DNA of 64,000 nucleotides from Macrostomum lignano (GCA_002269645.1 NIVC01002651.1:8482-72481); one strand, 5' to 3'. Positions 774 through 31,825 are shown, counted from the stretch's first letter. Made by a program: numbers and translations. Notes: generated by a model from the letters alone, not told the origin.

Positions 774-3700
774 TCTGTCGGTCCAGCGGATTCCACGGCC
801 TCGTGGCAGTCGGCAGCTGCTCTCTGGGCAGCTCGGTGCACCGGCTGGCCAAGTCCTTGCGAGTGCCCGCCATTTTTGTGCCAGCGGGGGAGCTGTGCCT
901 ACTGGACACTGCTGAGTCTGGTATGTGAGCTGTGCCTGCTGCATGGACACTGCTGAGTCTGGTATGTGAGCTGTGCCAGCTGGACACTGCAGAGTCTGGT
1001 ATGTGAGCTGTGCCAGCTGGACACTGCAGAGTCTGGTATGTGAGCTGTGCCAGCTGGACACTGCAGAGTCTGGTATGTGAGCTGTGCCTGCTGGACACTG
1101 CAGAGTCTGGTATGTGAGCTGTGCCTGCTGGACACTGCAGAGTCTGGTATGTGAGCTGTGCCTGCTGCTGGACACTGCAGAGTCTGGTATGTGAGCTGTG
1201 CGTGAGCTGTGCGTGAGCTGTGCGTGAGCTGTGCGTGAGCTGTGCGTGAGCTGTGCGTGAGCTGTGCGTGAGCTGTGCGTGAGCTGTGCGTGAGCTGTGC
1301 GTGAGCTGTGCGTGAGCTGTGCGTGAGCTGTGCGTGAGCTGTGCGTGAGCTGTGCGTGAGCTGTGCGTGAGCTGTGCGTGAGCTGTGCGTGAGCTGTTGT
1401 CCAACTCATTCATCCTGCAGAGTTTGCTTTTGTTGGCGATGATCACCCTAGCAGACTTTTGTCTGCAGTCGTCGCCCTGCTGAAGTCGCACTCAGCCAGC
1501 CTCGTGTCCGTGTTCTATGACAGTCACCAGGGTATGCGGCTGCTCTAAAATTGCCTTTTGTTATAATAGACTTAAACCATTGCTAATTGATACGTCGTAA
1601 ACGACAAACTTCAGATGAGAGCCAGATGCAGTCGCTCCAGTCGCAGCTGTCAGCCTCAGGCATTGCGGCTGTCAGCTTTCAAACTGATGCTCCAACGTCA
1701 AACATATCGAGAATTCTGGCTGACTCCATTAAAAAGAAAATCCGATTCAATCTGATCTTTGCCAGGCCCGATGCTGTCTACAGTCTGATAAGACAGGTGC
1801 TGTTTCACACTAGCTTTCAATTTCCAAATTTTTGGCCTTTATATTTTGATTGCGAAGCAAATTTTGCAGGCGGTTCAAGCGGAGGCAGTGCAGGCCCACT
1901 ACTACTGGCTGGCTCTGGACGAGGGGCTGCGGCCGAACCAGCTGCTGCGGCTGCTGCCACCCAACGTGTCGGCCAACGTCATGCTGGTCCGCGGCTCGAG
2001 TCACGGCCTGCTGGATCCGCAGCGGCTGCGGCTGAGCGGCGGCTGTCCCGACGCTCTGCGAGCCGTCATGGGCGACTCGTGCGACCCAGGAGCTGTCAGC
2101 GTGAGCATCTGAGCATTCTCATTGAGCCTTGGCATCTGAGCATTCTCATTGAGTCTTGGCATCTGAGCATTCTCATTGAGCCTTGGCATCTGAGCATTCT
2201 CATTGAGTCTTGGCATCTGAGCATTCTCATTGAGCCTCGGCATCTGAGCATTCTCATTGAGTCTTGGCATCTGAGCATTCTCATTGAGCCTTGGCATTCC
2301 GGCCATTGTGACCCGTGGTGGGCAAGCCATTGTGACCCGTGGTGGGCAAGCCATTGTGACCCGTGGTGGGCAAGCCATTGTGACCCGTGGTGGGCAAGCC
2401 ATTGTGACCCGTGGTGGGCAAGCCATTGTGACCCACGTGGGCAAGCCATTGTGACCCGTGGTGGGCAAGCCATTGGGACCCGTGGTGGGCAAGCCATTGT
2501 GACCCACGTGGGCAAGCCATTGTGACCCGTGGTGGGCAAGCCATTGGGACCCGTGGTGGGCAAGCCATTGGGACCCGTGGTGGGCAAGCCATTGTGACCC
2601 GTGGTGGGCAAGCCATTGTGACCCGTGGTGGGCAAGCCATTGTGACCCGTGGTGGGCAAGCCATTGTGACCCGTGGTGGGCAAGCCATTGTGACCCGTGG
2701 TGGGCAAGCCATTGGGACCCGTGGTGGGCAAGCCATTGGGACCCGTGGTGGGCAAGCCATTGGGACCCGTGGTGGGCAAGCCATTGTGACCCGTGGTGGG
2801 CAAGCCATTGTGACCCGTGGTGGGCAAGCCATTGTGACCCCTCAGCCTCCGTAGCTGCAGATGCGCTCCCAATCGCACTCAGTGAACTCATTTTCTCATC
2901 GAACATTCCAGTCTGTTGAGCTGCGCACCATTGACGCAGTTCTGGCCATGACGAGGGCTGTCCACAGCGTCACAGGCGGCTACACCAGCTCGAGCTCCAC
3001 CAACGCCAGCTGCAACGGCGCCACTCGAGCATGGCCTGATGGAGCACTGGCAGCTCGCGCTCTCGCTAAGGTTGTGAGCGACTTGTCTGCATTCCAACAC
3101 ATTCACATCCGGCATCACTGCTGGGAAACTTTTCATTGGAATTCCAGACCACGGACTTCAACACACTCGGCTCTCTGATTTCCTACAATGGCACCACGAG
3201 GCACTTCACCAGCTACATCGAGGCGGTGTCCACCTTCCACGCCTTCTACACGAGTCCGCTGAGGTACATCGAGAGCGCCAGGTACCACCCCGACAACGCC
3301 TCGCTCAGCGTCTCGTTCGTCTACAAAGACAGGCGACTGGCTTTCCCGAACACCTTCGTGGACTTCAAGAACCGAACTCTGCGAGTCTGCGCTCCGGATG
3401 TAGGAGCTAAATTTCAACTGTCACACTGAAGTATTTGGATTTCATACTTGAAAACTATACCTATTATTGTCTTGAATTTCAGGTTCGTCCCTACGTAATC
3501 TACGACGAGAACACTTACGGAAAGGTCACCGGCCACGCTGAGGATGTGCTCAATATTGTGCGAGAAAATCTGAACTTCTCGTTAGTGACTCGAAAGCGTG
3601 AAAATTCTTAGTCAATGCCACCAGTTTTAATGCAACTAACATATTGCACCGAGGGGGGGGGCCGTAGCCCAGCGGTAGCGCAGATGCTCTGGTGTCCAGC

Positions 3701-5404
3701 GACCCAGGCTCGATTCCAAGTGCAGTCGCATTAATTTGGGGCTGAATTGGAATTTTGGCTTGGCTCTGCTCGTGCAATTAACGGCTTTGAGAGCCAACCC
3801 CCCAAGGCGCAGTGAAGTGTACATGCCTAACGATAAATAAAGTTAGGGCCGCTGTACACTCCTGTGTGAGTGTGTGCCTGCGTACGTATCCGCGCGCTTG
3901 TGTGCCTGCTCAGGGGAGTCGGCGGAATGGGCAGTAATGCCTCTCACCGGTTGTGTGCCTATGTCGCTTAAAAAACATATTGCACCAATATTGCAGAACC
4001 ATCGTTCTGAAGCCGCCAGACGGGCAGTTCGGGGCGCCAATCAATGGCACGCAGCGCTTCTCCGGCTGCATTGGAGAGCTGCAGAATGGCGTGAGTTGCT
4101 TCTTGAAGATGGCTTAAGAGTCGCGACGGCTTCAAGTTGTTTGATAAATCTAGCTGTGAGTTTCAGTTTGTTCATCCGATTTCTCTTCCAGAAAGCAGAC
4201 TTGGCAGTCGTTTTCGCTGTCACCAATCTGCGCTATGCCGTCGTGGACTACTTGGACGACTACCTGTACTCATCCAACAACATCCTAGTCCGCATACCAC
4301 CCCCTGCCAGCAAAATCTGGAACGTGTTCACGCCGATGACGCTGCAAGTTTGGCTGCTGCTGGCTGCCTCCATCTTCATCGTGCCCTTCATCATCTACCT
4401 GCTGGCCTTGTTCAGCCCCTTCTCCGCTTGGAACCTGAAACTGAGCTTCGCTTTCGCCGACGAGGTCTGGTACAAGGAATACCTGTGGTCCACCATCGGC
4501 AGTTTCTTGCAACAGGGTCAGGACTTTTATCCATTCGCAATGTCGCCCAGAACCGTGATGGTGTTCTGGTGGCTGCTCACCGTTATTATATTTGGTGCAT
4601 ACACTGGAGACCTGACTGCTCACTTGGCTACATCAGTCAGCAGTTTGACTATTAGGACTCTGGAAGACCTGGTGTCCATGCCTTACTACACTGCTTTAGT
4701 ACCAAGGGGAACCAACATTCACACGGCGATCGACATGGCTACGTCGGGACCGATGTTCCAGCTGAAGTCCATGACTGTGCTGGTGCAATCGCACGAGGAC
4801 TGCGCTAGGAAGGTGAGGACTGTGCGCCCCGAATTTGGAATTCTTAGAACAGAAAGGTGCAACGAATCGGTGAAATTATGCGCCTTCAATTTTCAACTTT
4901 CAGCTGCTGGCCTCAACCAATCCGTACACTGTGTGCATCGCGGATCAGAAGTCCAATCTGTACTTTGCTAACCAATTCTGCGAAGAAATGTACGTGGCTG
5001 ACGAGTATTTTAACTTCTACTATCTGGCGTGGCCTGTGCCCAAGGATGCGTTCTATGCTGACGCCATGAACTTAATGTAAGCCGCTAATCCTGACAGTCA
5101 TGCCCACAGTGCTCTGATGCATTTGCTTTATTAATTGACGCGAAATTTACCTTCTAGAATTCGTCGGGCTAAAGAGAACGGCCTCGTTGACATGCTCCGG
5201 TTGAAGTACTTCCCAACTAGCAGCTCAGAGTGCTCAAGTGCACAGGGAGGGATATCGGATGCTGAGCCAATTAACCTGGAGGGCATCGGCGGATCCTGCT
5301 TGGTGCCAGGAGTCCTGTACTTAATTGGACTGCTCATCCTGCTGCTTGAGCTCTTCTGGACCGCCTGTCTGAACAAGGACCCGCTGCAGTGCGTCTTGTT
5401 CTGA
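774..5404 (+). CDS. Ionotropic glutamate receptor-like subunit, copy 1 (5'-partial; exon 1 is upstream of the window)
   Basis: Exons 774-920, 1421-1531, 1615-1796, 1870-2100, 2861(or 2855)-3070, 3148-3399, 3483-3580, 3997-4090, 4192-4812, 4904-5076, 5158-5404; all GT-AG with consistent phases. Motifs: S1 FKNRTLRV..VRPYV..GHAEDVL..LNF, DGQFG..SGCIGEL, KADLAV..LRYAVVDY; M1 VWLLLAASIFIV; pore LWSTIGSFLQQG; M3 FWWLLTVIIFGAYTGDLTAHL; S2 TIRTLEDL..RGT..IADQ; M4 EGIGG..LILLLE. Confidence 0.9.
890..1396. repeat. 37-40-bp exon2/donor-derived minisatellite followed by an 11-bp (GTGAGCTGTGC)n array (copy 1 intron 2)
   Basis: Unit GAGCTGTGCCAGCTGGACACTGCAGAGTCTGGTATGT begins inside exon 2; the 11-mer is a subsegment of it. 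Confidence 0.9.
2103..2840. repeat. Adjacent 27-bp and 24-bp minisatellites (copy 1 intron 5)
   Basis: GCATCTGAGCATTCTCATTGAGCCTTG, then CCATTGTGACCCGTGGTGGGCAAG. Confidence 0.95.
3651..3973 (+). mobile_element. tRNA-derived SINE (family A) inserted in copy 1 intron 8
   Basis: Absent from the same site in copy 2. 13-bp TSD AACATATTGCACC (3638-3650, 3974-3986). Head GGGGCCGTAGCCCAGCGG (A box) ... GGCTCGATTCC (B box); short A-tail. A related copy lies at 34508-34860. Confidence 0.9.
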
Positions 5405-5947: not shown

Positions 5948-7370
<1,423 letters not shown>

Positions 7371-8183
7371 TGTTTTGAAGGTTCATGCAATGAACTGAGT
7401 ATTCGCAATAAGAGACTTTAGTTTTTCGGCTACTTTTAGCCAAACGAATAAAAACCAAGAGCATAGAGCATACTCTCCCTGAAGAGACTGAAAATTATAT
7501 AATTTAACCTGAAAATTAAATAAGTGTACAAGTAGTTATTAAGTATACAAAAAATTCATGGTATGCTGAAAAGTACGCGTAGGTGAATCGATACAAATAC
7601 ATGTCAATGAAGCCCTCTCCTAAACAGTCAGTTGTACCCCCGCCAGTCGATTGTGCTCGGCAGGCAAACTGTGGCAGACAAATGACAGCATCCCTGTGCA
7701 GTGTCACTCAACACTGCTTAAACGGGGTGTGGCTACGGTGTACTTTCTGCGTGCAGCTGCACCGGTGCACAGCGCCAGACATATTGGTGCAAACGTCAGC
7801 ACGATAAGGAAATTCCTAATTACTTTTGTCTTGCCATTTGGGTTCCCGATTATCAACTGCACGCAGTTCCCCCTGCCCTAACTGGCTATTGTGGATCGCT
7901 TTGGAGGCAAAAGGAGTCCTGATTAGTGCGACAAAAGTAATGATACACGAAAATGAAAGCTGAAGCCGTTAATTCGCGAGCCAAATATCGATTCGAGCAT
8001 CGCTGAGACTCTGATCCCGTTAAGAAACTGTCCTTAGTGCATCGATTCGACCCCAAAAACACCCAACCAGCTTAGTTATCTCAGTGTCGCCTCCGGGAAG
8101 TTCTTGTCTATGTTCAATTAACGGTTTTTCTGGTCGATATCGATTGATTATTCACTGAGACACGGCGATATGACCAACTTCTG

Positions 8184-8192
8184 TCTATATAA
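8184..8192 (+). promoter_or_regulatory. Possible TATA box of iGluR copy 2 (also present ~24164 for copy 3)
   Basis: CTATATAAT about 95 bp upstream of the ATG; motif match only. Confidence 0.25.
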
Positions 8193-8282
8193 TAACTCAC
8201 CTGATCCTCTGCCGCTGGCTTTTCTTTGCTCCGCAATCTAAGAGTCAAGAGTCTGCCTCTAAAGCTACGGATTTTATTCACA

Positions 8283-11200
8283 ATGCTGGCGCTGCTAATG
8301 TTGTCGCTTCTTCTACTAGGAGAAGCCGCAGAAATTGCCCGGGCCCTGCGCCTCGCCGTGCTGGCTGAGCCGGGGCTGCTGCAGCCGGGTCTGGTGCAGC
8401 GAGTCGTCGACAGGCGGGTCAACCAGAACCCGCTGCTGTTCCCCGGCCTCAGCGAGTCCAACCCGCTCACCTGCCAGCTCGTGTCCGCTGACGACTCCGT
8501 CTTGGCTGTGCAACAGAGTGAGACATCTATGCAGAGCTTACCAGCAACAGCCATTGTTTATCTATGGCCAGTGCATCAATGCACTCTGTTTATCTATGGC
8601 CAGTGTATCAGTGCATTCTGTTTATCTATGGCCAGTGCATCAGTGCACTCTGTTTATCTATGGCCAGTGTATCAGTGCACTCTGTTTATCTATGGCCAGT
8701 GTATCAGTGCACTCTGTTTATCTATGGCCAGTGCATCAGTGCACTCTGTTTATCTATGGCCAGTGCATCAGTGCACTCTGTTTATCTATGGCCAGTGAAT
8801 TAGTGCACTCTGTTTATCTATGGCCAGTGAATTAGTGCACTCTGTTTATCTATGGCCAGTGAATTAGTGCACTCTGTTTATCTATGGCCAGTGAATTAGT
8901 GCACTCTGTTTATCTATGGCCAGTGCATCAGTGCACTCTAATACACTAGCTGTAAAACAATAACATTCAAATCCTATACTTAATTAATTACCTTGCAGTC
9001 TGTCGGTCCAGCGGATTCCACGGCCTCGTGGCAGTCGGCAGCTGCTCTCTGGGCAGCTCGGTGCACCGGCTGGCCAAGTCCTTGCGAGTGCCCGCCATTT
9101 TTGTGCCAGCGGGGGAGCTGTGCCAGCTGGACACTGCAGAGTCTGGTATGTGAGCTGTGCCTGCTGGACACTGCTGAGTCTGGTATGTGAGCTGTGCCAG
9201 CTGGACACTGCTGAGTCTGGTATGTGAGCTGTGCCTGCTGGACACTGCTGAGTCTGGTTTGTGAGCTGTGCCAGCTGGACACTGCAGAGTCTGGTTTGTG
9301 AGCTGTGCCTGCTGCATGGACACTGCTGAGTCTGCTTTGTGAGCTGTGCCTGCTGCATGGACACTGCTGAGTCTGCTTTGTGAGCTGTGCCTGCTGCATG
9401 GACACTGCTGAGTCTGCTTTGTGAGCTGTGCCTGCTGCATGGACACTGCTGAGTCTGGTATGTGAGCTGTGTAGCCAGGTGCATCAAGACCCGTCCGCCA
9501 ACCCAATTGCAGAGTTCTCATTCGTTGGCGAAGACCATCCCATCGGCCGCATTGGGTCTATCGAAGCCTTGCTTCGGTCAAAGTCAGCCAGTGTCGTGTC
9601 GATATTTTTCGACAATCATCAGAGTGAGCACAGGCGTTTTGAACTCAACTCTGCCGTTCATCACTTCTTTTAAATGCCTAGTTAATACAAAAAATTGAAA
9701 AAAAACACTTCAGATGAGCAGCTCATTCGGTCCCTGCACAACCAGTTGGCTGATGCGGGCATTGCGACAGTCAGCTTTCAGCTTGACACCATTGGAGTGA
9801 ACCTGTCAAGGATTTTGAAAGATTCCATCAAGAAGAAAGTGAAGTTCAATGTAGTACTGGCAGAGCCGGATGCAGTTTACAGTTTAATTGAACAGGTAAA
9901 TTCGGCTTCTTTGACAGACTTGTGCCTGAAACTCTGTGCCTTAGGGGTCGGCCACTGTGGTTGTGAATTGCAAAGGTGGGCGACACGTGACAATTTTTTA
10001 ACTTCATAATGTATCACCTGTACTGTTGTGTTTTTGCAGGCGGTTCAAGCGGAGGCAGTGCAGGCCCACTACTACTGGCTGGCTCTGGACGAGGGGCTGC
10101 GGCCGAACCAGCTGCTGCGGCTGCTGCCGCCCAACGTGTCGGCCAACGTCATGCTGGTCCGCGGCTCGAGTCACGGCCTGCTGGATCCGCAGCGGCTGCG
10201 GCTGAGCGGCGGCTGTCCCGACGCTCTGCGAGCCGTCATGGGCGACTCGTGCGATCCAGGAGCTGTCAGCGTGAGCACTCTGGCTGCTGGGACAGCAACT
10301 TCATGAGCCTTGGCATCTGAGCATTCTCATTGAGCCTTGGTATCTGAGCATTCTCATTGAGCCTTGGTATCTGAGCATTCTCATTGAGCCTTGGTATCTG
10401 AGCATTCTCATTGAGCCTTGGTATCTGAGAATTCTCATTGAGCCTTGGCATCTGAGCATTCTCATTGAGCCTTGGTATCTGAGCATTCTCATTGAGCCTT
10501 GGCATCTGAGCATTCTCATTGAGCCTTGGCATCTGAGCATTCTCATTGAGCCTTGGCATCTGAGAATTCTCATTGAGCCTCGGCATCTGAGCATTCTCAT
10601 TGAGTCTTGGCATCTGAGCATTCTCATTAAGCCTTGGCATCTGAGCATTCTAATTGAGTCTTGGCATTCCGGCCATTGTGACCCGTGGTGGGCAAGCCAT
10701 TGTGACCCGTGGTGGGCAAGCCATTGTGACCCGTGGTGGGCAAGCCATTGTGACCCGTGGTGGGCAAGCCATTGTGACCCGTGGTGGGCAAGCCATTGTG
10801 ACCCGTGGTGGGCAAGCCATTGTGACCCGTGGTGGGCAAGCCATTGTGACCCCTCAGCCTCCGTAGCTGCAGATGCGCTCCCGGTTGCACTCAGTGAACT
10901 CATTCTCTCATCGAACATTCCAGTCTGTTGAGCTGCGCACCATTGATGCAGTTCTGGCCATGACGAGGGCTGTCCACAGCGTCACAGGCGGCTACACCAG
11001 CTCGAGCTCCACCAACGCCAGCTGCAACGGCGCCACTCGAGCGTGGCCTGATGGAACACTGGCAGCTCGCGCTCTCGCTAAGGTTGTGAGCGACTTGTCT
11101 GCATTCCAACACATTCACATCCGGCATCACTGATGGGAAACTTTTCATTGGAATTCCAGACCACGGACTTCAACACACTCGGCTCTCTGATTTCCTACAA

Positions 11201-13615
11201 TGGCACCACGAGGCACTTCACCAGCTACATCGAGGCGGTGTCCACCTTCCACGCCTTCTACACGAGTCCGCTGAGGTACATCGAGAGCGCCAGATACCAC
11301 CCCGACAACGCCTCGCTCAGCGTCTCGTTCGTCTACAAAGACAGGCGACTGGCTTTCCCGAACACCTTCGTGGACTTCAAGAACCGAACTCTGCGAGTCT
11401 GCGCTCCGGATGTAGGAGCTAAATTTCAACTGTCACACTGAAGTATTTGGATTTCATACTTGAAAACTATACCTATTATTGTCTTGAATTTCAGGTTCGT
11501 CCCTACGTAATCTACGACGAGAACACTTACGGAAAGGTCACCGGCCACGCTGAGGATGTGCTTAATATTGTGCGAGAAAATCTGAACTTCTCGTTAGTGA
11601 CTCGAAAGCGTGAAAATTCTTAGTCAATGCCACCAGTTTTTATGCAACTAACATATTGCACCAATATTGCAGAACCATCGTTCTGAAGCCGCCAGACGGG
11701 CAGTTCGGGGCGCCAATCAATGGCACGCAGCGCTTCTCCGGCTGCATTGGAGAGCTGCAGAATGGCGTGAGTTGCTTCTTGAAGATGGCTTAAGAGTCGC
11801 GACGGCTTCAAGTTGTTTGATAAATCTAGCTGTGAGTTTCAGTTTGTTCATCCGATTTCTCTTCCAGAAAGCAGACTTGGCAGTCGTTTTCGCTGTCACC
11901 AATCTGCGCTATGCCGTCGTGGACTACTTGGATGACTACCTGTACTCATCCAACAACATCCTGGTCCGCATACCGCCTCCTGCCAGCAAAATCTGGAACG
12001 TGTTCACGCCGATGACGCTGCAAGTTTGGCTGCTGCTGGCTGCCTCCATCTTCATCGTGCCCTTCATCATCTACCTGTTGGCCTTGTTCAGCCCCTTCTC
12101 CGCTTGGAACCTGAAACTGAGCTTCGCTTTCGCCGACGAGGTCTGGTACAAGGAATACCTGTGGTCCACCATTGGCAGTTTCTTGCAACAGGGTCAGGAC
12201 TTTTATCCATTCGCAATGTCGCCCAGAACCGTGATGGTGTTCTGGTGGCTGCTCACCGTTATTATATTTGGTGCATACACTGGAGACCTGACTGCTCACT
12301 TGGCTACATCAGTCAGCAGTTTGACTATTAGGACTCTGGAAGACCTGGTGTCCATGCCTTACTACACTGCTTTAGTACCAAGGGGAACAAACATTCACAC
12401 GGCGATTGACATGGCTACGTCGGGACCGATGTTCCAGCTGAAGTCCATGACTGTGCTGGTGCAGTCGCACGAGGACTGCGCTAGGAAGGTGAGGATTGTG
12501 CGCCCCGAATTTTGAATTCTTAGAACAGAAAGGTGCAACGAATCGGTGAAATCATGCGCCTTTAAATTTTCAACTTTCAGCTGCTGGCCTCAACCAATCC
12601 GTACACTGTGTGCATCGCGGATCAGAAGTCCAATCTGTACTTTGCTAATCAATTCTGCGAAAAAATGTACGTGGCTGACGAGTATTTTAACTTCTACTAT
12701 CTGGCGTGGCCTGTGCCCAAGGATGCGTTCTATGCTGACGCCATGAACTTAATGTAAGCCGCTAATCCTGACAGTCATGCTCACAGTGCTCTGATGCATT
12801 AGCTTTGGAATGGGCGTGTAACCTCGCGGCTAAGCTGCTGGTTTTGCTAAGGATTACGAGTGGACTATTATCTGCTGTACTGATTTGAGATTTGGTAGAA
12901 TCGCTGCCACCAGGCTTCCTGCTTCCCTAATCCTATTATTTTGAGACAAAGGAAGAACTCAGGAAAACCAAATTATTTGACAAAAGTTTATACTTCAAAA
13001 AAATAGAACAGCATGCAATGGTTATTGTGCGAGAGTTTTAGGCATTGACTACCTGGTAGTGTACTGTTTTAGGCATCGACTACCACCAACAGTTTTACGT
13101 ATCTCCCAATATTTCCCCGCCTCTTACCTAATCCTACTTGAGACTACGCAAGTCCGCGAGCGAACGAAAGATCTGCTTACCCAAGCTTTAAACTGCTCTA
13201 TTCTTCTAAGGAATCCCGGAAACCTGCGATTTTCCCCGGCTCTAATTACTTTCCCAAACCTAAACTACTGACAGTAGGCAAAAAGCATATCTGCTTCGCT
13301 ACTAATTCCCATTCCTAAAATACTGCCCTACTACAGCTTTATTAATTGACGCGAAATTTACCTTCTAGAATTCGTCGGGCTAAAGAGAACGGCCTCGTTG
13401 ACATGCTCCGGTTGAAGTACTTCCCAACTAGCAGCTCAGAGTGCTCAAGTGCACAGGGAGGGATATCGGATGCTGAGCCAATTAACCTGGAGGGCATCGG
13501 CGGATCCTGCTTGGTGCCAGGAGTCCTGTATTTAATTGGACTGCTCATCCTGCTGCTTGAGCTCTTCTGGACCGCCTGTCTGAACAAGGACCCGCTGCAG
13601 TGCGTCTTGTTCTGA
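8283..13615 (+). CDS. Ionotropic glutamate receptor-like subunit, copy 2 (complete, ~866 aa)
   Basis: Exons 8283-8517, 8999-9145, 9513-9623, 9714-9895, 10040-10270, 10873(or 10867)-11082, 11160-11411, 11495-11592, 11673-11766, 11868-12488, 12581-12753, 13369-13615; total 2601 nt, open. Signal peptide MLALLMLSLLLLG; same iGluR motifs as copy 1. Confidence 0.92.
8555..8939. repeat. 32-bp minisatellite (copy 2 intron 1)
   Basis: Same unit as 1-714, ~12 copies. Confidence 0.95.
9115..9471. repeat. 37-40-bp exon2/donor-derived minisatellite (copy 2 intron 2)
   Basis: Same unit as 890-1195, with GGTATGT, GGTTTGT and GCTTTGT variants. Confidence 0.9.
10305..10851. repeat. 27-bp plus 24-bp minisatellites (copy 2 intron 5)
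   Basis: Same units as 2103-2840, different copy numbers. Confidence 0.95.
12807..13340. mobile_element. 534-bp segment in copy 2 intron 11, absent from copy 1 (possible non-autonomous insertion)
   Basis: Flanked by direct repeat AGCTTT (12801-12806, 13335-13340). Short inverted repeat GGAATGGG (12807) / CCCATTCC (13308-13315). Confidence 0.5.
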
Positions 13616-18612: not shown

Positions 18613-19446
18613 TCAGCCAATCAGGACCATGCCACCAGCTGGATCAGTCTTCAGCTTGTCGACCGAAGTGCCGCGAGATGCAACATCGGCAGGGTTCTCA
18701 CTGCCTGGCACGTGTCGCCATGATTCCTCCGGAAGCAGCCGGCGGATCTCAGAGACTCGGTTGTGAACAAAGAGCTTCCATGGCTTGTGCTGTCGGATCC
18801 AGTACAGAGTATCGGCACTATCTGTCCAGCAGAAAACTTGGCGGACTTGAGGATGTTGACTCAGGGCTGAAATCACTAGTCTGGCCAGTATCAGGGCACC
18901 TAATAGTTCCAGCCGAGGAACCGACAGGGCCGATAGTGGAGCCACTCTGGCCTTCGCCGTCACCAGGGTACAGCTGACAGAACCGTCGATGTACTGAACT
19001 CGTAGGTAGAGACAAGCCGCGTAGCGCTTTGCGGATGCGTCACAGAAGCCATGCAGCTGCATCTCTTGGACCACCCGTGTCGCGAAAAGCACCAGCCGCG
19101 GTACCTGGAATCGTGCTTTCAGCATGTCCTGCAGCCACTTCTGCCACAGCTGTTCAGTCGGCTCATCCAGCGGGCAATCCCAAGCAACTTTGTGAGCACA
19201 GAGTGTCTGAAACATTGTTTTCGGCCAAGTCAGTATTGGAACTAGGAAGCCGAGAGGATCATAGACACGTGCCAGAAGCTGTAGCATGACTCGCTTGGAT
19301 TGCGTAGCTCTGAGTAACTCCTCTGCTGGTGAGAACCGAAGCACGAACACGTCCGATCCGGTTTCCCAGTGCAACCCAAGGACCTTCGACAACACGCCCT
19401 CCTCACTCAATGAGGCGGAGGAATAGCTCCCCTGGTCCTCCGTCAT
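18613..19446 (-). pseudogene. BEL/Pao pol fragment (RT connection and RNase H)
   Basis: ORF with KVLGLHW, RVYDPLGF, LHGFCDAS, PRLELLGA, WTDS, NPADVASRG; neighbouring segments are frameshifted. Confidence 0.9.
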
Positions 19447-19525
19447 TCTGAGAGTCTCTACTGACAGGGCTGGAGCCAGAATGTCCTGGTCTGTAGCGCT
19501 AGCTCGAACTGCGGACTAAACCGCT

Positions 19526-20446
19526 TTACTGTTGGACTGCCAATGGCGTAGATTCATACCTGCCTGGCGGAAGACGTGACGGGATTTTTGGATGAGTTCC
19601 ATGGCTTGCCGTTCGCTTGCACACCCAGAGATATGTCCACATAGATCTCTCCACAAACTGCGCATCCTGGTCCCGATGAGATGCTAAATGATGTTGAATG
19701 ACCGTCTTCAGAATCCCAGGTGAGCAGGTGAGTCGGAATACCAAAGCGGCGTAACGAAGAACAACGAGTGGCGATTCAGCTCGACTTGGATCCTGTGGCC
19801 AGAGAAACCGCAGTGAATCCCGATCTTCTTCAGCAATGCGAATCTGAAGAAACGCCTCAATATCAGCTGTAAGAGCGATCGGATGAAACCGGAATGCTTG
19901 AAGAAGACGAGGAATCTCGACCAACGAACACGATCCAGTCTCCAGACACTCATTCAAGAACGAGCTCCACCGATCTCGCTTAGCACTGGCATCGAAAACT
20001 ACTCTGACCTTCGTCGACTCTGCTTCAGGACGAATCACTGCTCGGTGAGGCAAGTAGTGGACAAGATGGTGCGTGCCGTCGGGAACCTCATCCACTATTC
20101 CAGCTTCTTTCTGGCTCATCAGAATGTGGTGGTATTCCTGCAGCAGTGCGGGTTCACGGCGCAGCCTGCTCAGGTTGATCTGAAGCCTCTTGAATGCCAC
20201 GTCGAAGTTGTCCGGTAAGGTCAATTCCTCCTCGGGAAGCCTCCACGGCAGCTTGACTGAGTAGCGCCCATCCTGGAATTGACTGCCTAATTCGAAAGGC
20301 CGATGCTCAGGTTCGGATGCGCTGGTAATGCCAATGCCTTCAAGCGTCCAAAACGTCTCCATGGAACAGTGGTCAAGGCCTTTGAAGCACTTGCTCTTTT
20401 TTGTCTTCCAGTCCTCCTGCCGAAATGGCGTCGGACAAGGAGCCAC
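19526..20446 (-). pseudogene. BEL/Pao reverse transcriptase fragment
   Basis: RYSVKLPW, HYLPHRAV, KVRVVFDAS, LRFLW; the YVD motif lies in another frame (frameshift). Confidence 0.9.
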
Positions 20447-21297
20447 ACAGGAGCCACCAAAGCTGACTAGCTACCCCAACCAGCCCGGTGCTGATTTCAG
20501 AACGATCCACCTGTCCTGTGACAAGGTCATCGAACTGGTCAGCTCCTATGAGGATGCTGATCTCTGGATGCTGCTCGCTGCCGATGTCCCAGTCTGCAGC
20601 CATCTGGTGAAATCAGTACAGCTCCCGCAGTAGGAAGAACTACTGTCTGGGCCTTGGTGACCATCGCCATAGTCTTTACTTCGTGACTCTTGACACCCTG
20701 CGCGGCCGACTGTTCGACTTTCTTCTTCTCTGAACCCGCCGTATCGAAGGTGCAATAGGCGTCTTGTCTGCCGGTCTCGGTGGCTGTTCCACTGGCGCAG
20801 CGCAGACTGGGATGATGCTTTAACCACAGATCTTATAAACACTAGATAGGCCACTCCAGCTAATTTATTCACAACACGACGTTTACTCTACTTTCTGCTT
20901 AGTAGTAGTAAATACATTTTAGCGTTATTTATATTTAAAAAGCAAAAAAAACAAAATGAATGCAGTGCAGCAATTGCATTGATTTTAATTGCAAAAAGAA
21001 ACTTATAATTATACTTTCTACAATTCAAAGCAACATAGTGAATGCTTTAGATTGTATTGAAGGCTATATTATTGTAGTCAACTATTGTACATTTAGCAAA
21101 TACGACCTATATCATATACTCTATATTCGTGTAGCAAAATAGAAAGATTTCTCCTCTTATTCAGCTCATCTGTTTCTGAAACTTTCGCAGCGTGCTGTCG
21201 AAGCACAGGGTCGCCAGTCGCCTTTGTTCAGAGGCAGCATTCAGCACGGCTTAAGAGATGAAAAAAACTGGCAAATGCGCCTCTTCAAATCCCCCTT

Positions 21298-21456
21298 AAT
21301 CAACAATTAAGCGCTCACTGAGAGGCCTGCGAATATATTAAATATTTAGCTCAGTCTCTCGCAACAACCACCCCACCATGCGCACAGAGGAGGGGGGGAC
21401 GCCAAGCGTAAATACAAACCAGAGGATGCTAGGCAGGCACACAACTAACCCTAACA
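21298..21456 (-). repeat. Truncated 5' LTR of the BEL element
   Basis: Matches only the last ~160 bp (on +) of the other LTR; the inner ~50 bp and the PBS are missing. Confidence 0.85.
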
Positions 21457-23350
<1,894 letters not shown>

Positions 23351-24262
23351 TGTTTTGAAGGTTCATGCAATGAACTGAGTATTCGCAATAAGAGACTTTA
23401 GTTTTTCGGCTACTTTTAGCCAAACGAATAAAAACCAAGAGCATAGAGCATACTCTCCCTGAAGAGACTGAAAATTATATAATTTAACCTGAAAATTAAA
23501 TAAGTGTACAAGTAGTTATTAAGTATACAAAAAATTCATGGTATGCTGAAAAGTACGCGTAGGTGAATCGATACAAATACATGTCAATGAAGCCCTCTCC
23601 TAAACAGTCAGTTGTACCCCCGCCAGTCGATTGTGCTCGGCAGGCAAACTGTGGCAGACAAATGACAGCATCCCTGTGCAGTGTCACTCAACACTGCTTA
23701 AACGGGGTGTGGCTACGGTGTACTTTCTGCGTGCAGCTGCACCGGTGCACAGCGCCAGACATATTGGTGCAAACGTCAGCACGATAAGGAAATTCCTAAT
23801 TACTTTTGTCTTGCCATTTGGGTTCCCGATTATCAACTGCACGCAGTTCCCCCTGCCCTAACTGGCTATTGTGGATCGCTTTGGAGGCAAAAGGAGTCCT
23901 GATTAGTGCGACAAAAGTAATGATACACGAAAATGAAAGCTGAAGCCGTTAATTCGCGAGCCAAATATCGATTCGAGCATCGCTGAGACTCTGATCCCGT
24001 TAAGAAACTGTCCTTAGTGCATCGATTCGACCCCAAAAACACCCAACCAGCTTAGTTATCTCAGTGTCGCCTCCGGGAAGTTCTTGTCTATGTTCAATTA
24101 ACGGTTTTTCTGGTCGATATCGATTGATTATTCACTGAGACACGGCGATATGACCAACTTCTGTCTATATAATAACTCACCTGATCCTCTGCCGTTGGAT
24201 TTTCTTAGCGCCGCAATCTAAGAGTCAAGAGTCCGCCTCTAAAGCTACGGATTTTATTCACA

Positions 24263-27200
24263 ATGCTGGCGCTGCTAATGTTGTCGCTTCTTCTACTAGG
24301 AGAAGCCGCAGAAATTGCCCGGGCCCTGCGCCTCGCCGTGCTGGCTGAGCCGGGGCTGCTGCAGCCGGGTCTGGTGCAGCGAGTCGTCGACAGGCGGGTC
24401 AACCAGAACCCGCTGCTGTTCCCCGGCCTCGGCGAGTCCAACCCGCTCACCTGCCAGCTCGTGTCCGCTGACGACTCCGTCTTGGCTGTGCAACAGAGTG
24501 AGACATCTATGCAGAGCTTACCAGCAACAGCCATTGTTTATCTATGGCCAGTGCATCAATGCACTCTGTTTATCTATGGCCAGTGCATCAATGCACTCTG
24601 TTTATCTATGGCCAGTGCATCAATGCACTCTGTTTATCTATGGCCAGTGCATCAATGCACTCTGTTTATCTATGGCCAGTGCATCAATGCACTCTGTTTA
24701 TCTATGGCCAGTGTATCAGTGCATTCTGTTTATCTATGGCCAGTGCATCAGTGCACTCTGTTTATCTATGGCCAGTGTATCAGTGCACTCTGTTTATCTA
24801 TGGCCAGTGTATCAGTGCACTCTGTTTATCTATGGCCAGTGCATCAGTGCACTCTGTTTATCTATGGCCACTGCATCAGTGCACTCTGTTTATCTATGGC
24901 CAGTGAATTAGTGCACTCTGTTTATCTATGGCCAGTGAATTAGTGCACTCTGTTTATCTATGGCCAGTGCATCAGTGCACTCTAATACACTAGCTGTAAA
25001 ACAATAACATTCAAATCCTATACTTAATTAATTACCTTGCAGTCTGTCGGTCCAGCGGATTCCACGGCCTCGTGGCAGTCGGCAGCTGCTCTCTGGGCAG
25101 CTCGGTGCACCGGCTGGCCAAGTCCTTGCGAGTGCCCGCCATTTTTGTGCCAGCGGGGGAGCTGTGCCAGCTGGACACTGCAGAGTCTGGTATGTGAGCT
25201 GTGCCTGCTGGACACTGCTGAGTCTGGTATGTGAGCTGTGCCAGCTGGACACTGCTGAGTCTGGTATGTGAGCTGTGCCTGCTGGACACTGCAGAGTCTG
25301 GTTTGTGAGCTGTGCCAGCTGGACACTGCAGAGTCTGGTTTGTGAGCTGTGCCTGCTGCATGGACACTGCTGAGTCTGCTTTGTGAGCTGTGCCTGCTGC
25401 ATGGACACTGCTGAGTCTGGTATGTGAGCTGTGTAGCCAGGTGCATCAAGACCCGTCCGCCAACCCAATTGCAGAGTTCTCATTCGTTGGTGAAGACCAT
25501 CCCATCGGCCGCATTGGGTCTATCGAAGCCTTGCTTCGGTCAAAGTCAGCCAGTGTCGTGTCGATATTTTTCGACAATCATCAGAGTGAGCACAGGCGTT
25601 TTGAACTCAACTCTGCCGTTCATCACTTCTTTTAAATGCCTAGTTAATACAAAAAATTGAAAAAAACACTTCAGATGAGCAGCTCATTCGGTCCCTGCAC
25701 AACCAGTTGGCTGATGCGGGCATTGCGACAGTCAGCTTTCAGCTTGACACCATTGGAGTGAACCTGTCAAGGATTTTGAAAGATTCCATCAAGAAGAAAG
25801 TGAAGTTCAATGTAGTACTGGCAGAGCCGGATGCAGTTTACAGTTTAATTGAACAGGTAAATTCGGCTTCTTTGACAGACTTGTGCCTAAAACTCTGTGC
25901 CTTAGGGGTCGGCCACTGTGGTTGTGAATTGCAAAGGTGGGCGACACGTGACAATTTTTTAACTTCATGATGTATCACCTGTACTGTTGTGGTTTTGCAG
26001 GCGGTTCAAGCGGAGGCAGTGCAGGCCCACTACTACTGGCTGGCTCTGGACGAGGGGCTGCGGCCGAACCAGCTGCTGCGGCTGCTGCCGCCCAACGTGT
26101 CGGCCAACGTCATGCTGGTCCGCGGCTCGAGTCACGGCCTGCTGGATCCGCAGCGGCTGCGGCTGAGCGGCGGCTGTCCCGACGCTCTGCGAGCCGTCAT
26201 GGGCGACTCGTGCGATCCAGGAGCTGTCAGCGTGAGCACTCTGGCTGCTGGGACAGAAACTTCATGAGCCTTGGCATCTGAGCATTCTCATTGAGCCTTG
26301 GCATCTGAGCATTCTCATTGAGCCTTGGCATCTGAGAATTCTCATTGAGCCTCGGCATCTGAGCATTCTCATTGAGTCTTGGCATCTGAGCATTCTCATT
26401 AAGCCTTGGCATCTGAGCATTCTCATTGAGTCTTGGCATCTGAGCATTCTCATTGAGCCTTGGCATCTGAGAATTCTCATTGAGCCTCGGCATCTGAGCA
26501 TTCTCATTGAGTCTTGGCATTCCGGCCATTGTGACCCGTGGTGGGCAAGCCATTGTGACCCGTGGTGGGCAAGCCATTGTGACCCGTGGTGGGCAAGCCA
26601 TTGTGACCCGTGGTGGGCAAGCCATTGTGACCCGTGGTGGGCAAGCCATTGTGACCGTGGTGGGCAAGCCATTGTGACCCCTCAGCCTCCGTAGCTGCAG
26701 ATGCGCTCCCGGTTGCACTCAGTGAACTCATTCTCTCATCGAACATTCCAGTCTGTTGAGCTGCGCACCATTGACGCAGTTCTGGCCATGACGAGGGCTG
26801 TCCACAGCGTCACAGGCGGCTACACCAGCTCGAGCTCCACCAACGCCAGCTGCAACGGCGCCACTCGAGCGTGGCCTGATGGAACACTGGCAGCTCGCGC
26901 TCTCGCTAAGGTTGTGAGCGACTTGTCTGCATTCCAACACATTCACATCCGGCATCACTGATGGGAAACTTTTCATTGGAATTCCAGACCACGGACTTCA
27001 ACACACTCGGCTCTCTGATTTCCTACAATGGCACCACGAGGCACTTCACCAGCTACATCGAGGCGGTGTCCACCTTCCACGCCTTCTACACGAGTCCGCT
27101 GAGGTACATCGAGAGCGCCAGGTACCACCCCGACAACGCCTCGCTCAGCGTCTCGTTCGTCTACAAAGACAGGCGACTGGCTTTCCCGAACACCTTCGTG

Positions 27201-30200
27201 GACTTCAAGAACCGAACTCTGCGAGTCTGCGCTCCGGATGTAAGTGGAGAAGGCTTGCTATTAAGTTTGTAGGAGTATTGCTCACCTAATTTAAGACTTT
27301 AACAGTAGAACAACCTAGAGGGGGAAGAATTCCCCCTGACAATTTTTTGTCAACGCAGGCACACAAAATTCAAGAACACAGGCTAACTTTTTGTTGCGCA
27401 CCTTCTCAAACAAGAATCAAGTCGCCAGCCCTCCAGACCGTCGAGATATTCGACCATTCTGCCAGAAGGTCGGAATTTTTCCATAAGCGCTACTGTTCTC
27501 AGTACACCCCAGTGCGCCAAACAGCACTGCGCCAAGCCTCTAAATTTCATCATCACGTCGAAGACATGTGTCTGCATCAGCTCTGACTTCGTTGGTCACT
27601 GGCCTTCACCCTGGCGGAGCTTCTGGACCTTCACCCTGGCGGTGGGCAAGCCTCAACTGCTGGACATCCTCAGCTAGTCTCTCAAGAATTCCGTCATCAC
27701 CTCGATGTTGAATTTCGTGTGCCTGCGTTGCTCCCCCCGTCCGGCGGAAAATGGCTTGGTTTTCCTACTGTTGATCCGGCTTTCCAGTTCCGGCCGTACA
27801 CCGTATTCGATAACAGGACGGACGGCAAGGTCACTGGCCACTCTGAAGATCTGCTTAACGTGCTGAGGATCGACCTTAATTTCTCGTGAGCGCCGAATAA
27901 TACTTGAAAATCATGATGCTTTCGGATAAAAGAGAGTTAATGAACCGCTTTTGTTGATCTGAATCTGTAGCACCATCGTTTTAAAGCCGCCTGATGGCGT
28001 CTTCGGCACTCCGATCAATGGAACTCAGCAATTTTCCGGCTGCATCGGAGAGCTGCAGAAGGGAGTGAGTCGTGCTGCTTGCTTCTATTCAATGCTTTTC
28101 TTTCCAAAGTAAATTTAAACTGGGGATTTTTAATACAGTCTTTAATTAGTCTTTGTTGTCTTTGTTGTTCCTGTCTATGACCAGTCCTCACCTGCTCCTG
28201 TCTATGACCAGTCCTCACCTGCTCCTGTCTATGATCAGTCCTCACCTGCTCCTGTCTATGACCAGTCCTCACCTGCTCCTGTCTATGATCAGTCCTCACC
28301 TGCTCCTGTCTATGACCAGTCCTCACCTGCTCCTGTCTATGACCAGTCCTCACCTGCTCCTGTCTATGACCAGTCCTCACCTGCTCCTGTCTATGACCAG
28401 TCCTCACCTGCTCCTGTCTATGATCAGTCCTCACCTGCTCCTGTCTATGATCAGTCCTCACCTGATCCTGTCTATGATCAGTCCTCACCTGCTCCTGTCT
28501 TTGACCAGTCCTTACCTGCTCCTGTCTATGATCAGTCCTCACCTGCTCCTGTCTTTGACCAGTCCTCACCTGCTCCTGTCTATGACCAGTCCTAACCTTG
28601 CTGAACTCGAACCGTTGCACTTCTCACAAGAATTCGGATCTGGCCATGCTGTTTGCCATCACGAACGTTCGCTATGCCGTCGTGGACTACTTGGATGACT
28701 ACCTGTACTCATCCAACAACATCCTGGTCCGCATACCGCCTCCTGCCAGCAAAATCTGGAACGTGTTCACGCCGATGACTCCGCAAGTTTGGCTGCTACT
28801 GGCTGCCTCCATCTTCATCGTGCCCTTCATCATCTACCTGTTGGCCTTGTTCAGCCCTTTCTCCGCTTATAACCTCAAACTGAGCTTTGGTTTTGCCGAC
28901 GAAATCTGGTACAAGGAGCACCTCTGGTCCACCATAGGCAGTTTCTTGCAACAGGGTCAGGACTTTTATCCGTTCGCAATGTCTGCCCGAATCGTGATGG
29001 CTTTCTGGTGGCTGCTCACCGTTATTATATTTGGAGCCTACACCGGTGACCTTGCGGCTCACCTGGCTACATCAGTCAGCAGTCTGCCGATCCAGACTCT
29101 GCAGGACCTGGTGTCCATGCCTTACTACACTGCTTTAGTACCAAGGGGAACCAACATTCAGACAGCGATCGACATGGCTACGTCGGGACCGATGTTCCAG
29201 CTGAAGTCCATGACTGTGCTGGTGCAATCGCACGAGGACTGCGCTAGGAAGGTGAGGCTCGAAAAGGCAGACTTGTTTTGTTGGCGGCACGAGAGTTGCC
29301 CGCCGGGAGCTGAATAGAGATTTTCGGCAGGCGTAGCCATGTACTCACCGCCCAGCAGCTGGTTGCAGCCAGCTTCTAGCAGGAAGCAGTTACAGGCACC
29401 TTTGTAGTTTGCCCCTCTGTAGCTGGCGCCCCCTCTGTAGCTGGCGCCCCCTCTGTTGCTGGCGCCCCCTCTGTAGCTGGCGCCCCCTCTGTTGCTGGCG
29501 CCCCCTCTGTTGCTGGCGCCCCCTCTGTAGCTGGCGCCCCCTCTGTAGCTGGCGCCCCCTCTGTAGCTGGCGCCCCTCTGTAGCTGGCGCCCCCTCTGTA
29601 GCTGGCGCCCCTCTGTAGCTGGCGCCCCCTCTGTAGCTGGCGCCCCCTCTGTAGCTGGCGCCCCTCTGTAGCTGGCGCCCCTCTGTAGCTGGCGCCCCTC
29701 TGTAGCTGGCGCCCCCTCTGTAGCTGGCGCCCCTCTGTAGCTGACGCCCCTTTGTAGCTGGCGCCCCCTCTGTAGCTGGCACCCCCTCTGTTGCTGGCGC
29801 CCCCTCTGTAGCTGGCGCCCCTCTGTAGCTGGCGCCCCCTCTGTAGCTGACGCCCCTCTGTAGCTGGCGCCCCCTCTCTTGCTGGCGCCCCCTAATCCAA
29901 TCTACACACCCTATCACCCCAGCTACACCCTAGAACCTCAGTTGCATTCCCAGTAACCCAGCTACATACCCAGTTCCCCAGCTACACACCCCAGTAACCC
30001 AACTACACACCCCAGTAACCCAGCTACACACCCCAGTAACCCAGCTACACACCCTAGTAACCCAGCTACACACCCTAGTAACCCAACTACACACCCCAGT
30101 AACCCAGCTACACACCCCAGTAACCCAGCTACACACCCCAGTAACCCAGCTACACACCCCAATAACCCAGCTACACACCCCAATAACCCAGCTACACACC

Positions 30201-31825
30201 CCAGTAACCCAGCTACACACCCCAATAACCCAGCTACACACCCCAATAACCCAGCTACACACCCCAGTAACCCAGCTACACACCCCAGTAACCCAGCTAC
30301 ACACCCCAATAACCCAGCTACACACCCCAGTAACCCAGCTACACACTCCAGAACCCCAGCTACATGTACATAACCCAGTACCCCAGAGCTCTACATACCC
30401 TTAGTAGACACTCAGTGTCTCGCGTACAAAATTTACGCGGGAAAATCTCGGCGGACAATTCTTGTACATTTAGATCTCGTTTGGTTTCGTGTAGAGTCTC
30501 AGTCTTCAAAATATTGCCTGCATTTTCAGCTTTTAGCAACAAACAATCCGTACACTGTGTGCATCGCGGATCAGATGTCCAATCTGTACTTTGCTAACCA
30601 ATTCTGCGAAAATGTTTACGTGGCTAAGGAATATTTTAACTTTTACTATCTGGCTTGGACGGTGCCACAGGATGCGTTTTACATCGATGCTATGAATTTT
30701 GTGTAAGTTTATTAAATGTTTATGAGATTCATGATGGACTGTAGATCTTTGAGTCGTTAAGCGTATGCGCACTGATTCGAAATACTCCAAGATCCTCAGG
30801 CCTCTCCAGCTCTTCGCGCTAACTTAAGGGTTCTGCTGATACGCACTTCAATTCCTCAAGCTAGCCCACACTGTACATTCGTTTCTAAATTTAGGGCTTC
30901 TGCTGATACACGCTTCAACTCCAACCCCCTCAAGCTAGCCCACACTGTACATTCGTTTCTAAATTTAGGGCTTCTGCTGATACACGCTTCAACTCCAGCC
31001 CCCTCAAGCTAGCCCACACTGTACATTCGTTTCTAAATTTAGGGCTTCTGCTGATACACGCTTCAACTCCAACCCCCTCAAGCTAGCCCACACTGTACAT
31101 TCGTTTCTAAATTTAGGGCTTCTGCTGATACACGCTTCAACTCCAGCCCCTCAAGCTAGCCCACACTGTACATTCGTTTCTAAATTTAGGGCTTCTGCTG
31201 ATACACGCTTCAACTCCAACCCCCTCAAGCGAGCCCACACTGTACATTCGTTTCTAAATTTAGGGCTTCTGCTGATACACGCTTCAACTCCAACCCCCTC
31301 AAGCTAGCCCACACTGTACATTCGTTTCTAAATTTAGGGCTTCTGCTGATACACGCTTCAACTCCAACCCCCTCAAGCTAGCCCACACTGTACATTCGTT
31401 TCTAAATTTAGAGCAGTTTTTTTAGATTATATACTTTCTTTGTAGTTATACTCAAACAGTTCACTTAGTCTCATTTTACTGTGTATTCAATTTTTTTATT
31501 CTCCTGTACTACCAGTCTTACTTTATCTAACAACACCGTTCTCATTCTTACTAAATTTCCTCTTGCTGAAACATCCACCAGCGTAAGTCGAGCCAGAGAG
31601 AACGGCCTCGTTGACATGCTCCGACTGAAGTACTTTCCAGCCAGCAGCTCAGAGTGCTCAAGCTCCCAGCTGATGGCGGAGGCTGACCCAATCAACCTGG
31701 ATGGCATCGGCGGATCCTGTTTGGTGCCAGGAGTCCTGTATTTAATTGGAATGCTCATCCTGCTGCTTGAGCTCTTCTGGACCGCCTGTCTGAGCAAGGA
31801 CCCGCTGCAATGCATCATATTCTGA
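24263..31825 (+). CDS. Ionotropic glutamate receptor-like subunit, copy 3 (complete, ~865 aa; exons 8-12 diverged)
   Basis: Exons 24263-24497, 25043-25189, 25475-25585, 25675-25856, 26001-26231, 26701-26910, 26988-27239, 27788-27885, 27971-28064, 28631-29251, 30530-30702, 31582-31825. Exon lengths and phases match copy 2 (last exon 3 nt shorter). M3 AYTGDLAAHL; ends LQCIIF. Confidence 0.9.
24535..24983. repeat. 32-bp minisatellite (copy 3 intron 1)
   Basis: Same unit as 1-714, ~14 copies. Confidence 0.95.
25159..25433. repeat. 37-40-bp exon2/donor-derived minisatellite (copy 3 intron 2)
   Basis: Same unit as in copies 1 and 2. Confidence 0.9.
26265..26680. repeat. 27-bp plus 24-bp minisatellites (copy 3 intron 5)
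   Basis: Same units as 2103-2840. Confidence 0.95.
27351..27730. mobile_element. MITE-like element with 23-bp TIRs (copy 3 intron 7)
   Basis: CAACGCAGGCACACAAAATTCAA ... TTGAATTTCGTGTGCCTGCGTTG (1 mismatch); 380 bp; no clear TSD. Confidence 0.65.
28168..28592. repeat. 27-bp minisatellite (copy 3 intron 9)
   Basis: CTGTCTATGACCAGTCCTCACCTGCTC, ~16 copies. Confidence 0.95.
29410..30365. repeat. 17/18-bp (GCTGGCGCCCC(C)TCTGTA) and 21-bp (CCCAGCTACACACCCCAGTAA) minisatellites (copy 3 intron 10)
   Basis: Two adjacent arrays, ~29410-29893 and ~29915-30365. Confidence 0.95.
30826..31410. repeat. 74-bp minisatellite (copy 3 intron 11)
   Basis: Period 74 (TGCTGATACA at 30901 and 30975), ~8 copies. 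Confidence 0.95.

Follow-up and report, generated by a model that had tools for sequence, protein, structure and literature searches.

How do neighbouring receptor genes come to be nearly identical over whole runs of exons and saturated with silent differences over others? The question is raised by a stretch of 64,000 nucleotides from Macrostomum lignano (GCA_002269645.1 NIVC01002651.1:8482-72481; "the window" below, with positions counted from its first letter), in which repeat-masked self-comparison finds a unit of ~8.2 kb three times on the plus strand, with one ionotropic glutamate receptor (iGluR)-like gene in each unit. The answer that we favor, and consider probable, is that this is a young tandem array of delta-like iGluRs whose members combine, through recombination, blocks from two old paralog lineages (labeled Q and R below). 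All of copy 2 is of Q type; copy 1 is its ~1% diverged whole-unit duplicate with a 0.46-kb foreign island; and copy 3 is a Q-type upstream region plus exons 1-7 fused, at the end of exon 7, to old diverged exons 8-12.

The blocks were compared by repeat-masked self-BLAST of the window, and the gene models were built by hand from open frames and GT-AG sites. All three genes lie on the plus strand and have 12 exons, GT-AG introns and matching exon lengths and phases (exon 12 of copy 3 differs by one codon; all other exon lengths are equal across the copies), and the three models contain no internal stops, as expected from an earlier note on this DNA, which had read open frames and conserved phases in every copy. 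The models are as follows:

774-5404, plus strand: copy 1, exons 2-12, an open GT-AG model with exon 1 beyond the left window edge; exon 2, 774-920; exon 3, 1421-1531; exon 4, 1615-1796; exon 5, 1870-2100; exon 6, 2912-3070; exon 7, 3148-3399; exon 8, 3483-3580; exon 9, 3997-4090; exon 10, 4192-4812; exon 11, 4904-5076; exon 12, 5158-5404
8283-13615, plus strand: copy 2, complete, 849 aa, from the GT-AG model and Pfam; exon 1, 8283-8517; exon 2, 8999-9145; exon 3, 9513-9623; exon 4, 9714-9895; exon 5, 10040-10270; exon 6, 10924-11082; exon 7, 11160-11411; exon 8, 11495-11592; exon 9, 11673-11766; exon 10, 11868-12488; exon 11, 12581-12753; exon 12, 13369-13615
24263-31825, plus strand: copy 3, complete, 848 aa, from the GT-AG model and Pfam; exon 1, 24263-24497; exon 2, 25043-25189; exon 3, 25475-25585; exon 4, 25675-25856; exon 5, 26001-26231; exon 6, 26752-26910; exon 7, 26988-27239; exon 8, 27788-27885; exon 9, 27971-28064; exon 10, 28631-29251; exon 11, 30530-30702; exon 12, 31582-31825

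Copies 1 and 2 are 98.4-99.6% identical over the genes and the intergenic DNA with one exception, a tract within which self-BLAST finds no DNA match at all between the two copies:

1398-1861, plus strand: old diverged island of copy 1 (464 bp; from the end of intron 2 into intron 4, taking in exons 3 and 4 and the intron between them)
9472-10031, plus strand: its counterpart in copy 2 (560 bp), 99.3% identical to the copy 3 counterpart at 25434-25992

The copy 1 island has no DNA match in copy 3 either. It encodes residues 128-225 of the amino-terminal domain (ATD), a 98-aa segment in which nucleotide identity to copy 2 is 63% in exon 3 and 62% in exon 4, and amino acid identity is 58% (21 of 37 residues in exon 3 and 36 of 61 in exon 4). 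By the Nei-Gojobori method the proportion of synonymous sites that differ in exons 3-4 (pS) is 0.77, which is saturated, and that of nonsynonymous sites (pN) is 0.26; the background synonymous divergence (dS) between these two copies is 0.03-0.06. Mismatches number 111 in the 293 nt of exons 3-4 and 22 in the 2022 nt of the other exons (Fisher P = 1e-85), and over the whole unit divergence is ~1% (5' half, 1.3%; 3' half, 1.0%). The earlier note had placed the diverged tract at ~1397-1862 and had counted 21 of 37 identical residues in exon 3, and both values were recovered, the tract to within a base at each end. Its statement that copies 1 and 2 match almost base for base holds for exon 2 and exons 5-12; in intron 1, which is a 32-bp minisatellite whose copy number differs in each gene, it holds within aligned repeats only (~96%).

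Copies 2 and 3 are related in a different manner. Their identity is 99.3-100% between 7372/23352, 1.2 kb 5' of the start codon, and 11414/27242, where intron 7 has run for three bases, and beyond this point they belong to an old pair of sequences:

23352-27242, plus strand: young block that copy 3 shares with copy 2, from the upstream intergenic DNA through exon 7 and 3 nt into intron 7, matching 7372-11414
27243-31825, plus strand: old diverged block of copy 3 (everything from +4 of intron 7 to the end of exon 12), encoding the ligand-binding domain, channel and C-terminus
28670-28857, plus strand: near-identical patch 1 of copy 3, within exon 10 and covering the end of S1 to M1; it differs from copy 2 at 3 of 188 nt
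29105-29257, plus strand: near-identical patch 2 of copy 3 (start of S2; its end is 6 nt into intron 10), 5 mismatches in 153 nt

The shared block contains 14 differences in 2752 unique bases (0.5%), and dS over exons 1-7 is 0.010. Inside the old block the introns cannot be aligned and the exons alone align (78-92% in self-BLAST), with nucleotide identities of 64%, 78%, 90% and 83% in exons 8, 9, 10 and 11 and dS values of 1.9 (exons 8-9), 0.34 (exon 10), 0.79 (exon 11) and 0.25 (exon 12); thus 4 mismatches in the 1317 nt of exons 1-7 stand against 147 in the 986 nt of exons 8-11 (Fisher P = 3e-51). The last shared base, 27242, is the position from which copy 3 had been said to diverge, the count of 20 of 33 identical residues in exon 8 was reproduced, and the two patches in exon 10 were found close to where they had been noticed (~28680-28860 and ~29110-29255). 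The longest identical run in exon 10 is 110 nt, for which a permutation that keeps codon-position counts gives P = 0.00025. In patch 1 copy 3 carries the copy 2 base at all five sites that separate copies 1 and 2, and in patch 2 three of the five mismatches are private to copy 2, copy 3 being the same as copy 1 there. As a whole, the ligand-binding and channel parts of copies 2 and 3 are 85% identical, and their amino-terminal domains are the same.

A separate observation concerns the 1183-bp upstream flank of copies 2 and 3, in which five of the six differences fall within 40 bp (8215-8254 and 24195-24234) just 5' of the start codon; this cluster could have arisen by micro-conversion or could represent grouped mutations in the 5' untranslated region or promoter.

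What process makes such blocks? Introns are 98-100% identical outside the diverged blocks and unalignable inside them. At three-way informative sites in the shared 5' blocks, 11 of 13 unite copies 2 and 3, the other two are private to copy 2 and none unites copies 1 and 2, and in the 3' half copies 1 and 2 are grouped against copy 3. Because synonymous and intronic sites shift alongside coding sites, the pattern is one of recombination between paralogs and not of local selection, and the sharp shifts, the co-shifting silent and intronic sites and the change of topology are together best explained by interlocus gene conversion and/or unequal crossover between older paralogs, as the earlier note had proposed. 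Neither a single topology nor uniform divergence is seen, since the grouping switches from 2+3 to 1+2 along the gene. In exon 10, patch 1 places copy 3 with copy 2 and patch 2 places it with copy 1, and this mixed base sharing indicates that small exchanges persisted after the large events. The proposed shuffling of modules is likewise borne out, in that copy 1 has a different ATD segment and copy 3 joins the copy 2 ATD to a different ligand-binding, channel and C-terminal part. The suggestion that the shuffling is diversifying found no such backing: dN/dS (dN being nonsynonymous divergence) is 0.1-0.4 in the diverged blocks, which indicates that both versions of each block have been under purifying selection, and no diversifying selection was seen there. 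With their open frames and conserved phases as well, both versions look functional. The mosaic can be read equally well as homogenization (concerted evolution) that has spared old islands.

How many old lineages are needed? The two versions of exons 3-4 are equidistant from the outgroup paralog P0015, and the two versions of the 3' half are equidistant from paralog P0020; the versions are therefore each other's closest relatives. Two old lineages suffice.

The positions of the block edges are of particular interest, and the following repeats bear on them:

890-1397, plus strand: intron-2 minisatellite of copy 1, 37-bp units and then an 11-bp array, ending at the left edge of the island
9115-9471 (copy 2) and 25159-25433 (copy 3), plus strand: counterparts with the same repeat

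On the left, the island starts where the intron-2 minisatellite reaches its 3' end, and on the right it stops 8 nt short of the exon 5 acceptor; the copy 3 junction is at +3 of the intron-7 donor and patch 2 ends at +6 of the intron-10 donor, so that most block edges lie at a minisatellite or no more than 8 nt from an exon edge. Old paralogs would share homology in exons and shared intronic minisatellites alone, and heteroduplex formation and branch migration would halt where homology ends; with homology confined in this way, tracts would be expected to end at exon or repeat edges. The copy 3 join falls at codon 439/440, beside the start of S1, which is the boundary between the amino-terminal and ligand-binding domains, and copy 3 is by its predicted protein a domain chimera. 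In the 37-bp minisatellite unit the final 31 nt of exon 2 are followed by the donor GTATGT, which makes the coding end of exon 2 the first unit of the array. Exon 2 differs between copies 1 and 2 at three sites (including Q121L), and the same three differences recur as variants in downstream repeat units; splicing at any later minisatellite donor would add an in-frame TGA.

Does this junction occur elsewhere? A second, unrelated cluster, L001 (GCA_002269645.1 NIVC01000067.1:181593-219642), is the locus of the 42%-identical paralog Mlig017883.g1 and holds three iGluR copies, one of them inverted:

~3508-7160 of L001, minus strand: iGluR copy
~9988-13500 of L001, plus strand: iGluR copy
~24157-27792 of L001, plus strand: iGluR copy

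The three share 97-100% identity across ~1.5 kb coding for the amino-terminal domain, after which one copy falls to 50-75%, apart from a channel-region patch at 95-97%. The breakpoint, FKN|RT, is 28 nt 5' of the donor of the intron homologous to intron 7 (the L001 paralogs possess an intron 7 equivalent) and nine codons from the copy 3 junction of the window. On the basis of these two junctions nine codons apart we tentatively raise the possibility, to which we give a good deal less than even weight, that recombination recurs at the ATD/S1 boundary in a Macrostomum-specific delta-like iGluR expansion, sharing an ATD cassette among neighbors that have different ligand-binding and channel cassettes. 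L002, the duplicate of the L001 cluster, covers a single copy, broken by an insertion, and so gives the L001 mosaic no replicate. The annotated Mlig017883.g1 spans two of the L001 copies.

The history that we propose for the window would have three steps. A unit duplication would have produced an array Q-Q-R; a short interlocus gene conversion would have placed an R-type exon 3-4 segment in copy 1, its donor being perhaps the original 5' half of copy 3; and a later long conversion or crossover would have swapped the 5' half of copy 3 for that of copy 2. The copy 1 island could then be the sole surviving piece of the original 5' half of copy 3; the old blocks do not overlap and are both saturated at silent sites, so that this reading is compatible with the data. 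Placing the duplication first and the exchange between copies 2 and 3 later is suggested by the uniform divergence of copies 1 and 2 in both halves compared with the 0.5% of copies 2 and 3, and both partners of that exchange are present in the window. Non-allelic conversion tracts in humans have a mean length of ~250 bp (confidence interval 63-1000; doi 10.1101/135152), and the island sizes of 464 and 560 bp are within this range and so fit gene conversion. The two-lineage model and the direction of each transfer are what we infer from these comparisons.

Public gene models were also compared with the window. UniRef entry A0A1I8HNV3 (M. lignano) consists of copy 1 exons, including its exons 3-4, followed by copy 2 exons, with pieces that are 100% identical, and A0A1I8JJ64 is exactly copy 2 exons 8-12. 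Four further near-identical M. lignano models were found, several models carry a 3' half of the copy 1 or copy 2 type, and in the protein databases the copy 1 type of exons 3-4 and the copy 1/2 type of 3' half matched only models of this locus or of near-identical duplicates. No protein with copy-2-type exons 3-4 or a copy-3-type 3' half was found in the databases searched, and no NCBI transcript-based models for the three window genes turned up in the searches. The public M. lignano models at this locus are fused or truncated. One other model, A0A1I8I4V2 (2220 aa), probably joins several tandem genes.

Several points weigh against the proposed history. A donor for the island was found neither in the window nor in the searched protein databases; the order of events leans on a modest difference in rate (P = 0.045 and 0.014); the coincidence with exon edges concerns two or three edges and was noticed post hoc (a rough calculation, 2 of 2 within 8 nt, gives P = 0.007); and the copy number of the array is that of the assembled sequence. 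M. lignano assemblies are highly redundant, moreover, and the published genome has 180 Mb in duplicated blocks at least 95% identical, 15% simple or tandem repeats and 21% long terminal repeat (LTR) elements (PMC5730564), with which the make-up of the window is consistent.

Could copy 2 be the recombinant instead? In that case a copy-3-like gene and a copy-1-like gene would have crossed over unequally once, inside exon 7, with the intergenic DNA duplicated as well. A single step would then give a copy-3-like flank and exons 1-7 joined to copy-1-like exons 8-12 and downstream DNA, with the switch at 11133-11414 in exon 7, where the three copies are identical save for one base private to copy 2. 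This alternative predicts that the two young blocks are equally old, and the values found, 0.5% (copies 2 and 3, 5') and 1.0% (copies 1 and 2, 3'), reject it weakly (P = 0.045). It also needs earlier conversions, because copies 1 and 3 must already have been ~99% alike in exon 2 and exons 5-7 and not in exons 3-4, and it leaves the matching 5' and 3' divergence of copies 1 and 2 (1.3% and 1.0%) as a coincidence. We consider it unlikely, though the strongest of the competitors.

An assembly artefact, in which haplotypes or duplicated chromosomes were joined in tandem or polishing homogenized paralogs, gains some plausibility from the redundancy just described and from the long microsatellites that separate the copies; private insertions in two of the copies speak to the same question:

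5948-7371, no strand assigned: TAGT microsatellite downstream of copy 1, from self-comparison
14159-16642 and 21457-23351, no strand assigned: TAGT microsatellite downstream of copy 2, split by a retroelement
3651-3973, no strand assigned: retroposon of ~320 bp that only copy 1 has, in intron 8; target-site duplication of 13 bp, A-rich tail
12807-13335, no strand assigned: 529-bp insertion private to intron 11 of copy 2, with the 5-bp flanking duplication GCTTT

The window has no N gaps, and copies 1 and 2 differ in these insertions with target-site duplications and in minisatellite lengths; such private insertions are indirect evidence that the two are separate loci. Copy 3 is clearly a different gene that shares 3.9 kb including the promoter region, and a mis-join cannot yield a drop, three bases into an intron, from 99.5% identity to sequence that no longer aligns. 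The same island and the same copy 1-then-copy 2 order recur in other M. lignano gene models, and L001, another locus of GCA_002269645.1, is similarly mosaic. An artefact is accordingly improbable, and more so than a recombinant copy 2. The remaining idea, that the genes are of a single age and the blocks reflect local mutation rate or selection without recombination, has in its favor that the diverged blocks match functional segments (part of the ATD; the ligand-binding domain), and we give it practically no credence, because synonymous divergence jumps more than 30-fold between neighboring exons, the introns are affected along with the exons and the topology changes along the gene, evidence on which explanations by selection only and by mutation rate were both rejected.

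What sort of receptor does the mosaic array encode? Copy 2 exceeds the Pfam cut-offs for Lig_chan (73.9 bits) and Lig_chan-Glu_bd (47.8 bits), and copy 3 is similar; the ANF_receptor match is weak (22.2 bits against a cut-off of 25.4), and the alignment to GluD1 spans the ATD from residue 58. The predicted amino-terminal domain would be full-length, at ~430 aa. Among solved structures GluD1 is the best full-length match (E = 3e-38), ahead of AMPA and kainate receptors. The nearest proteins all come from M. lignano and are at most 53% identical, and beyond this species mollusc "delta-1-like" iGluRs and cestode proteins are best, at 26-30% identity. Ranked by similarity, the genes appear to be delta-like. 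They resemble GluD1 and GluD2, of the AKDF class (Ramos-Vicente et al. 2018, PMC6307864), in the domain order ATD, S1, M1, pore loop, M3, S2, M4, in having GluD1 as the best full-length structure match and in the "delta-1-like" names of their nearest outside relatives; they are unlike them in that identity to those relatives is only 26-30%, in that M3 reads AYTGDLTAHL, a partial match to SYTANLAAFL, and in that the clade is a Macrostomum-specific expansion. The pore loop FLQQGQD is present. The GluD1 alignment shows the S1 Arg kept (R517), Ala in place of the S1 Thr and Gln in place of the S2 acidic residue; on these grounds the ligand is probably not a standard alpha-amino acid bound in the canonical manner.

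The earlier note had gone on to suggest a chemosensory family. The chemosensory ionotropic receptors (IRs; Croset et al. 2010, PMC2924276) also belong to the iGluR superfamily, occur in tandem clusters and have lost canonical glutamate contacts, their ligand-binding domains lacking some or all of the S1 Arg, S1 Thr and S2 Asp/Glu. The window genes are unlike them in apparently keeping the amino-terminal domain, which IRs other than the co-receptors IR25a and IR8a are without, and in scoring best against delta, AMPA and kainate receptors; and the IR expansion was attributed to duplications arising through non-allelic homologous recombination, not to intragenic mosaics as found here (PMC2924276). 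With the amino-terminal domain apparently retained and the nearest relatives outside Macrostomum being mollusc delta-1-like iGluRs, a chemosensory role is unsupported.

The other contents of the window are as follows:

16643-21456, minus strand: degenerate Pao/BEL LTR retrotransposon inside the TAGT microsatellite downstream of copy 2
34550-34858, minus strand: second copy of the intron-8 retroposon, 81% identical, downstream of the array
56384-57196, minus strand: likely coding, claudin-like
44794-45357, minus strand: likely coding, CUB exon
41043-41726, minus strand: likely coding, cysteine-rich open reading frame

The Pao/BEL insertion is the reason that unit 2 measures 16 kb instead of 8 kb. 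Its LTRs are 159-bp direct repeats (16694-16851 and 21298-21456) that are 96.9% identical and so more diverged than copies 1 and 2, and its minus strand has matches to Peptidase_A17, DUF5641 and, weakly, rve. The TAGT array may have been the place where the unit was duplicated. In all three genes the introns are crowded with minisatellites; no introner-like similarity was found among the window introns, and no tRNA-derived head was detected in the intron-8 retroposon. When the three proteins were run by tblastn against the window, additional iGluR exons were absent from 5.4-8.2 kb, from 16.6-23.4 kb and from 32-64 kb. The likely coding pieces 3' of the array comprise a claudin/PMP22-like four-pass membrane protein of 270 aa (Claudin_2, E = 4e-20), a CUB-domain exon and a nearby cysteine-rich open reading frame with no Pfam match, and the remainder of 32-64 kb is mainly minisatellites and microsatellites.

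How unusual is this locus? Classic mosaics of neighboring genes include the red/green opsin hybrids, the RHD/RHCE exon-block hybrids, the glycophorin A/B hybrids and CYP21A2/CYP21A1P. Like those arrays of interlocus conversion and unequal crossover, the window has adjacent same-strand paralogs, sharp blocks, preserved frames, silent sites and introns converted together with coding sites and a small island of tract size, and the mechanism is well known, being the ordinary signature of recombination between neighboring copies. It is unlike them in where its edges fall, at minisatellites in introns and no more than 8 nt from an exon edge, in having one junction that is at a domain boundary and recurs in L001, and in that a donor for the small island was not found. 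The chief interest of the locus is how precisely its edges match exon and domain boundaries, together with the return of the pattern in L001; it also illustrates cleanly, and in a form that can be dated, how exon-limited homology confines conversion tracts between old paralogs. The array would encode three subunits, two of which share an ATD and have 85%-identical ligand-binding and channel parts, and another pair of which has near-identical ligand-binding and channel parts and differs in one ATD segment; these natural domain chimeras would be ready constructs with which to study the roles of iGluR modules in assembly and ligand choice. If recombination does recur at the ATD/S1 boundary, receptors here would be evolving by repeated natural domain swaps, steered by exon-limited homology and by minisatellites in introns.

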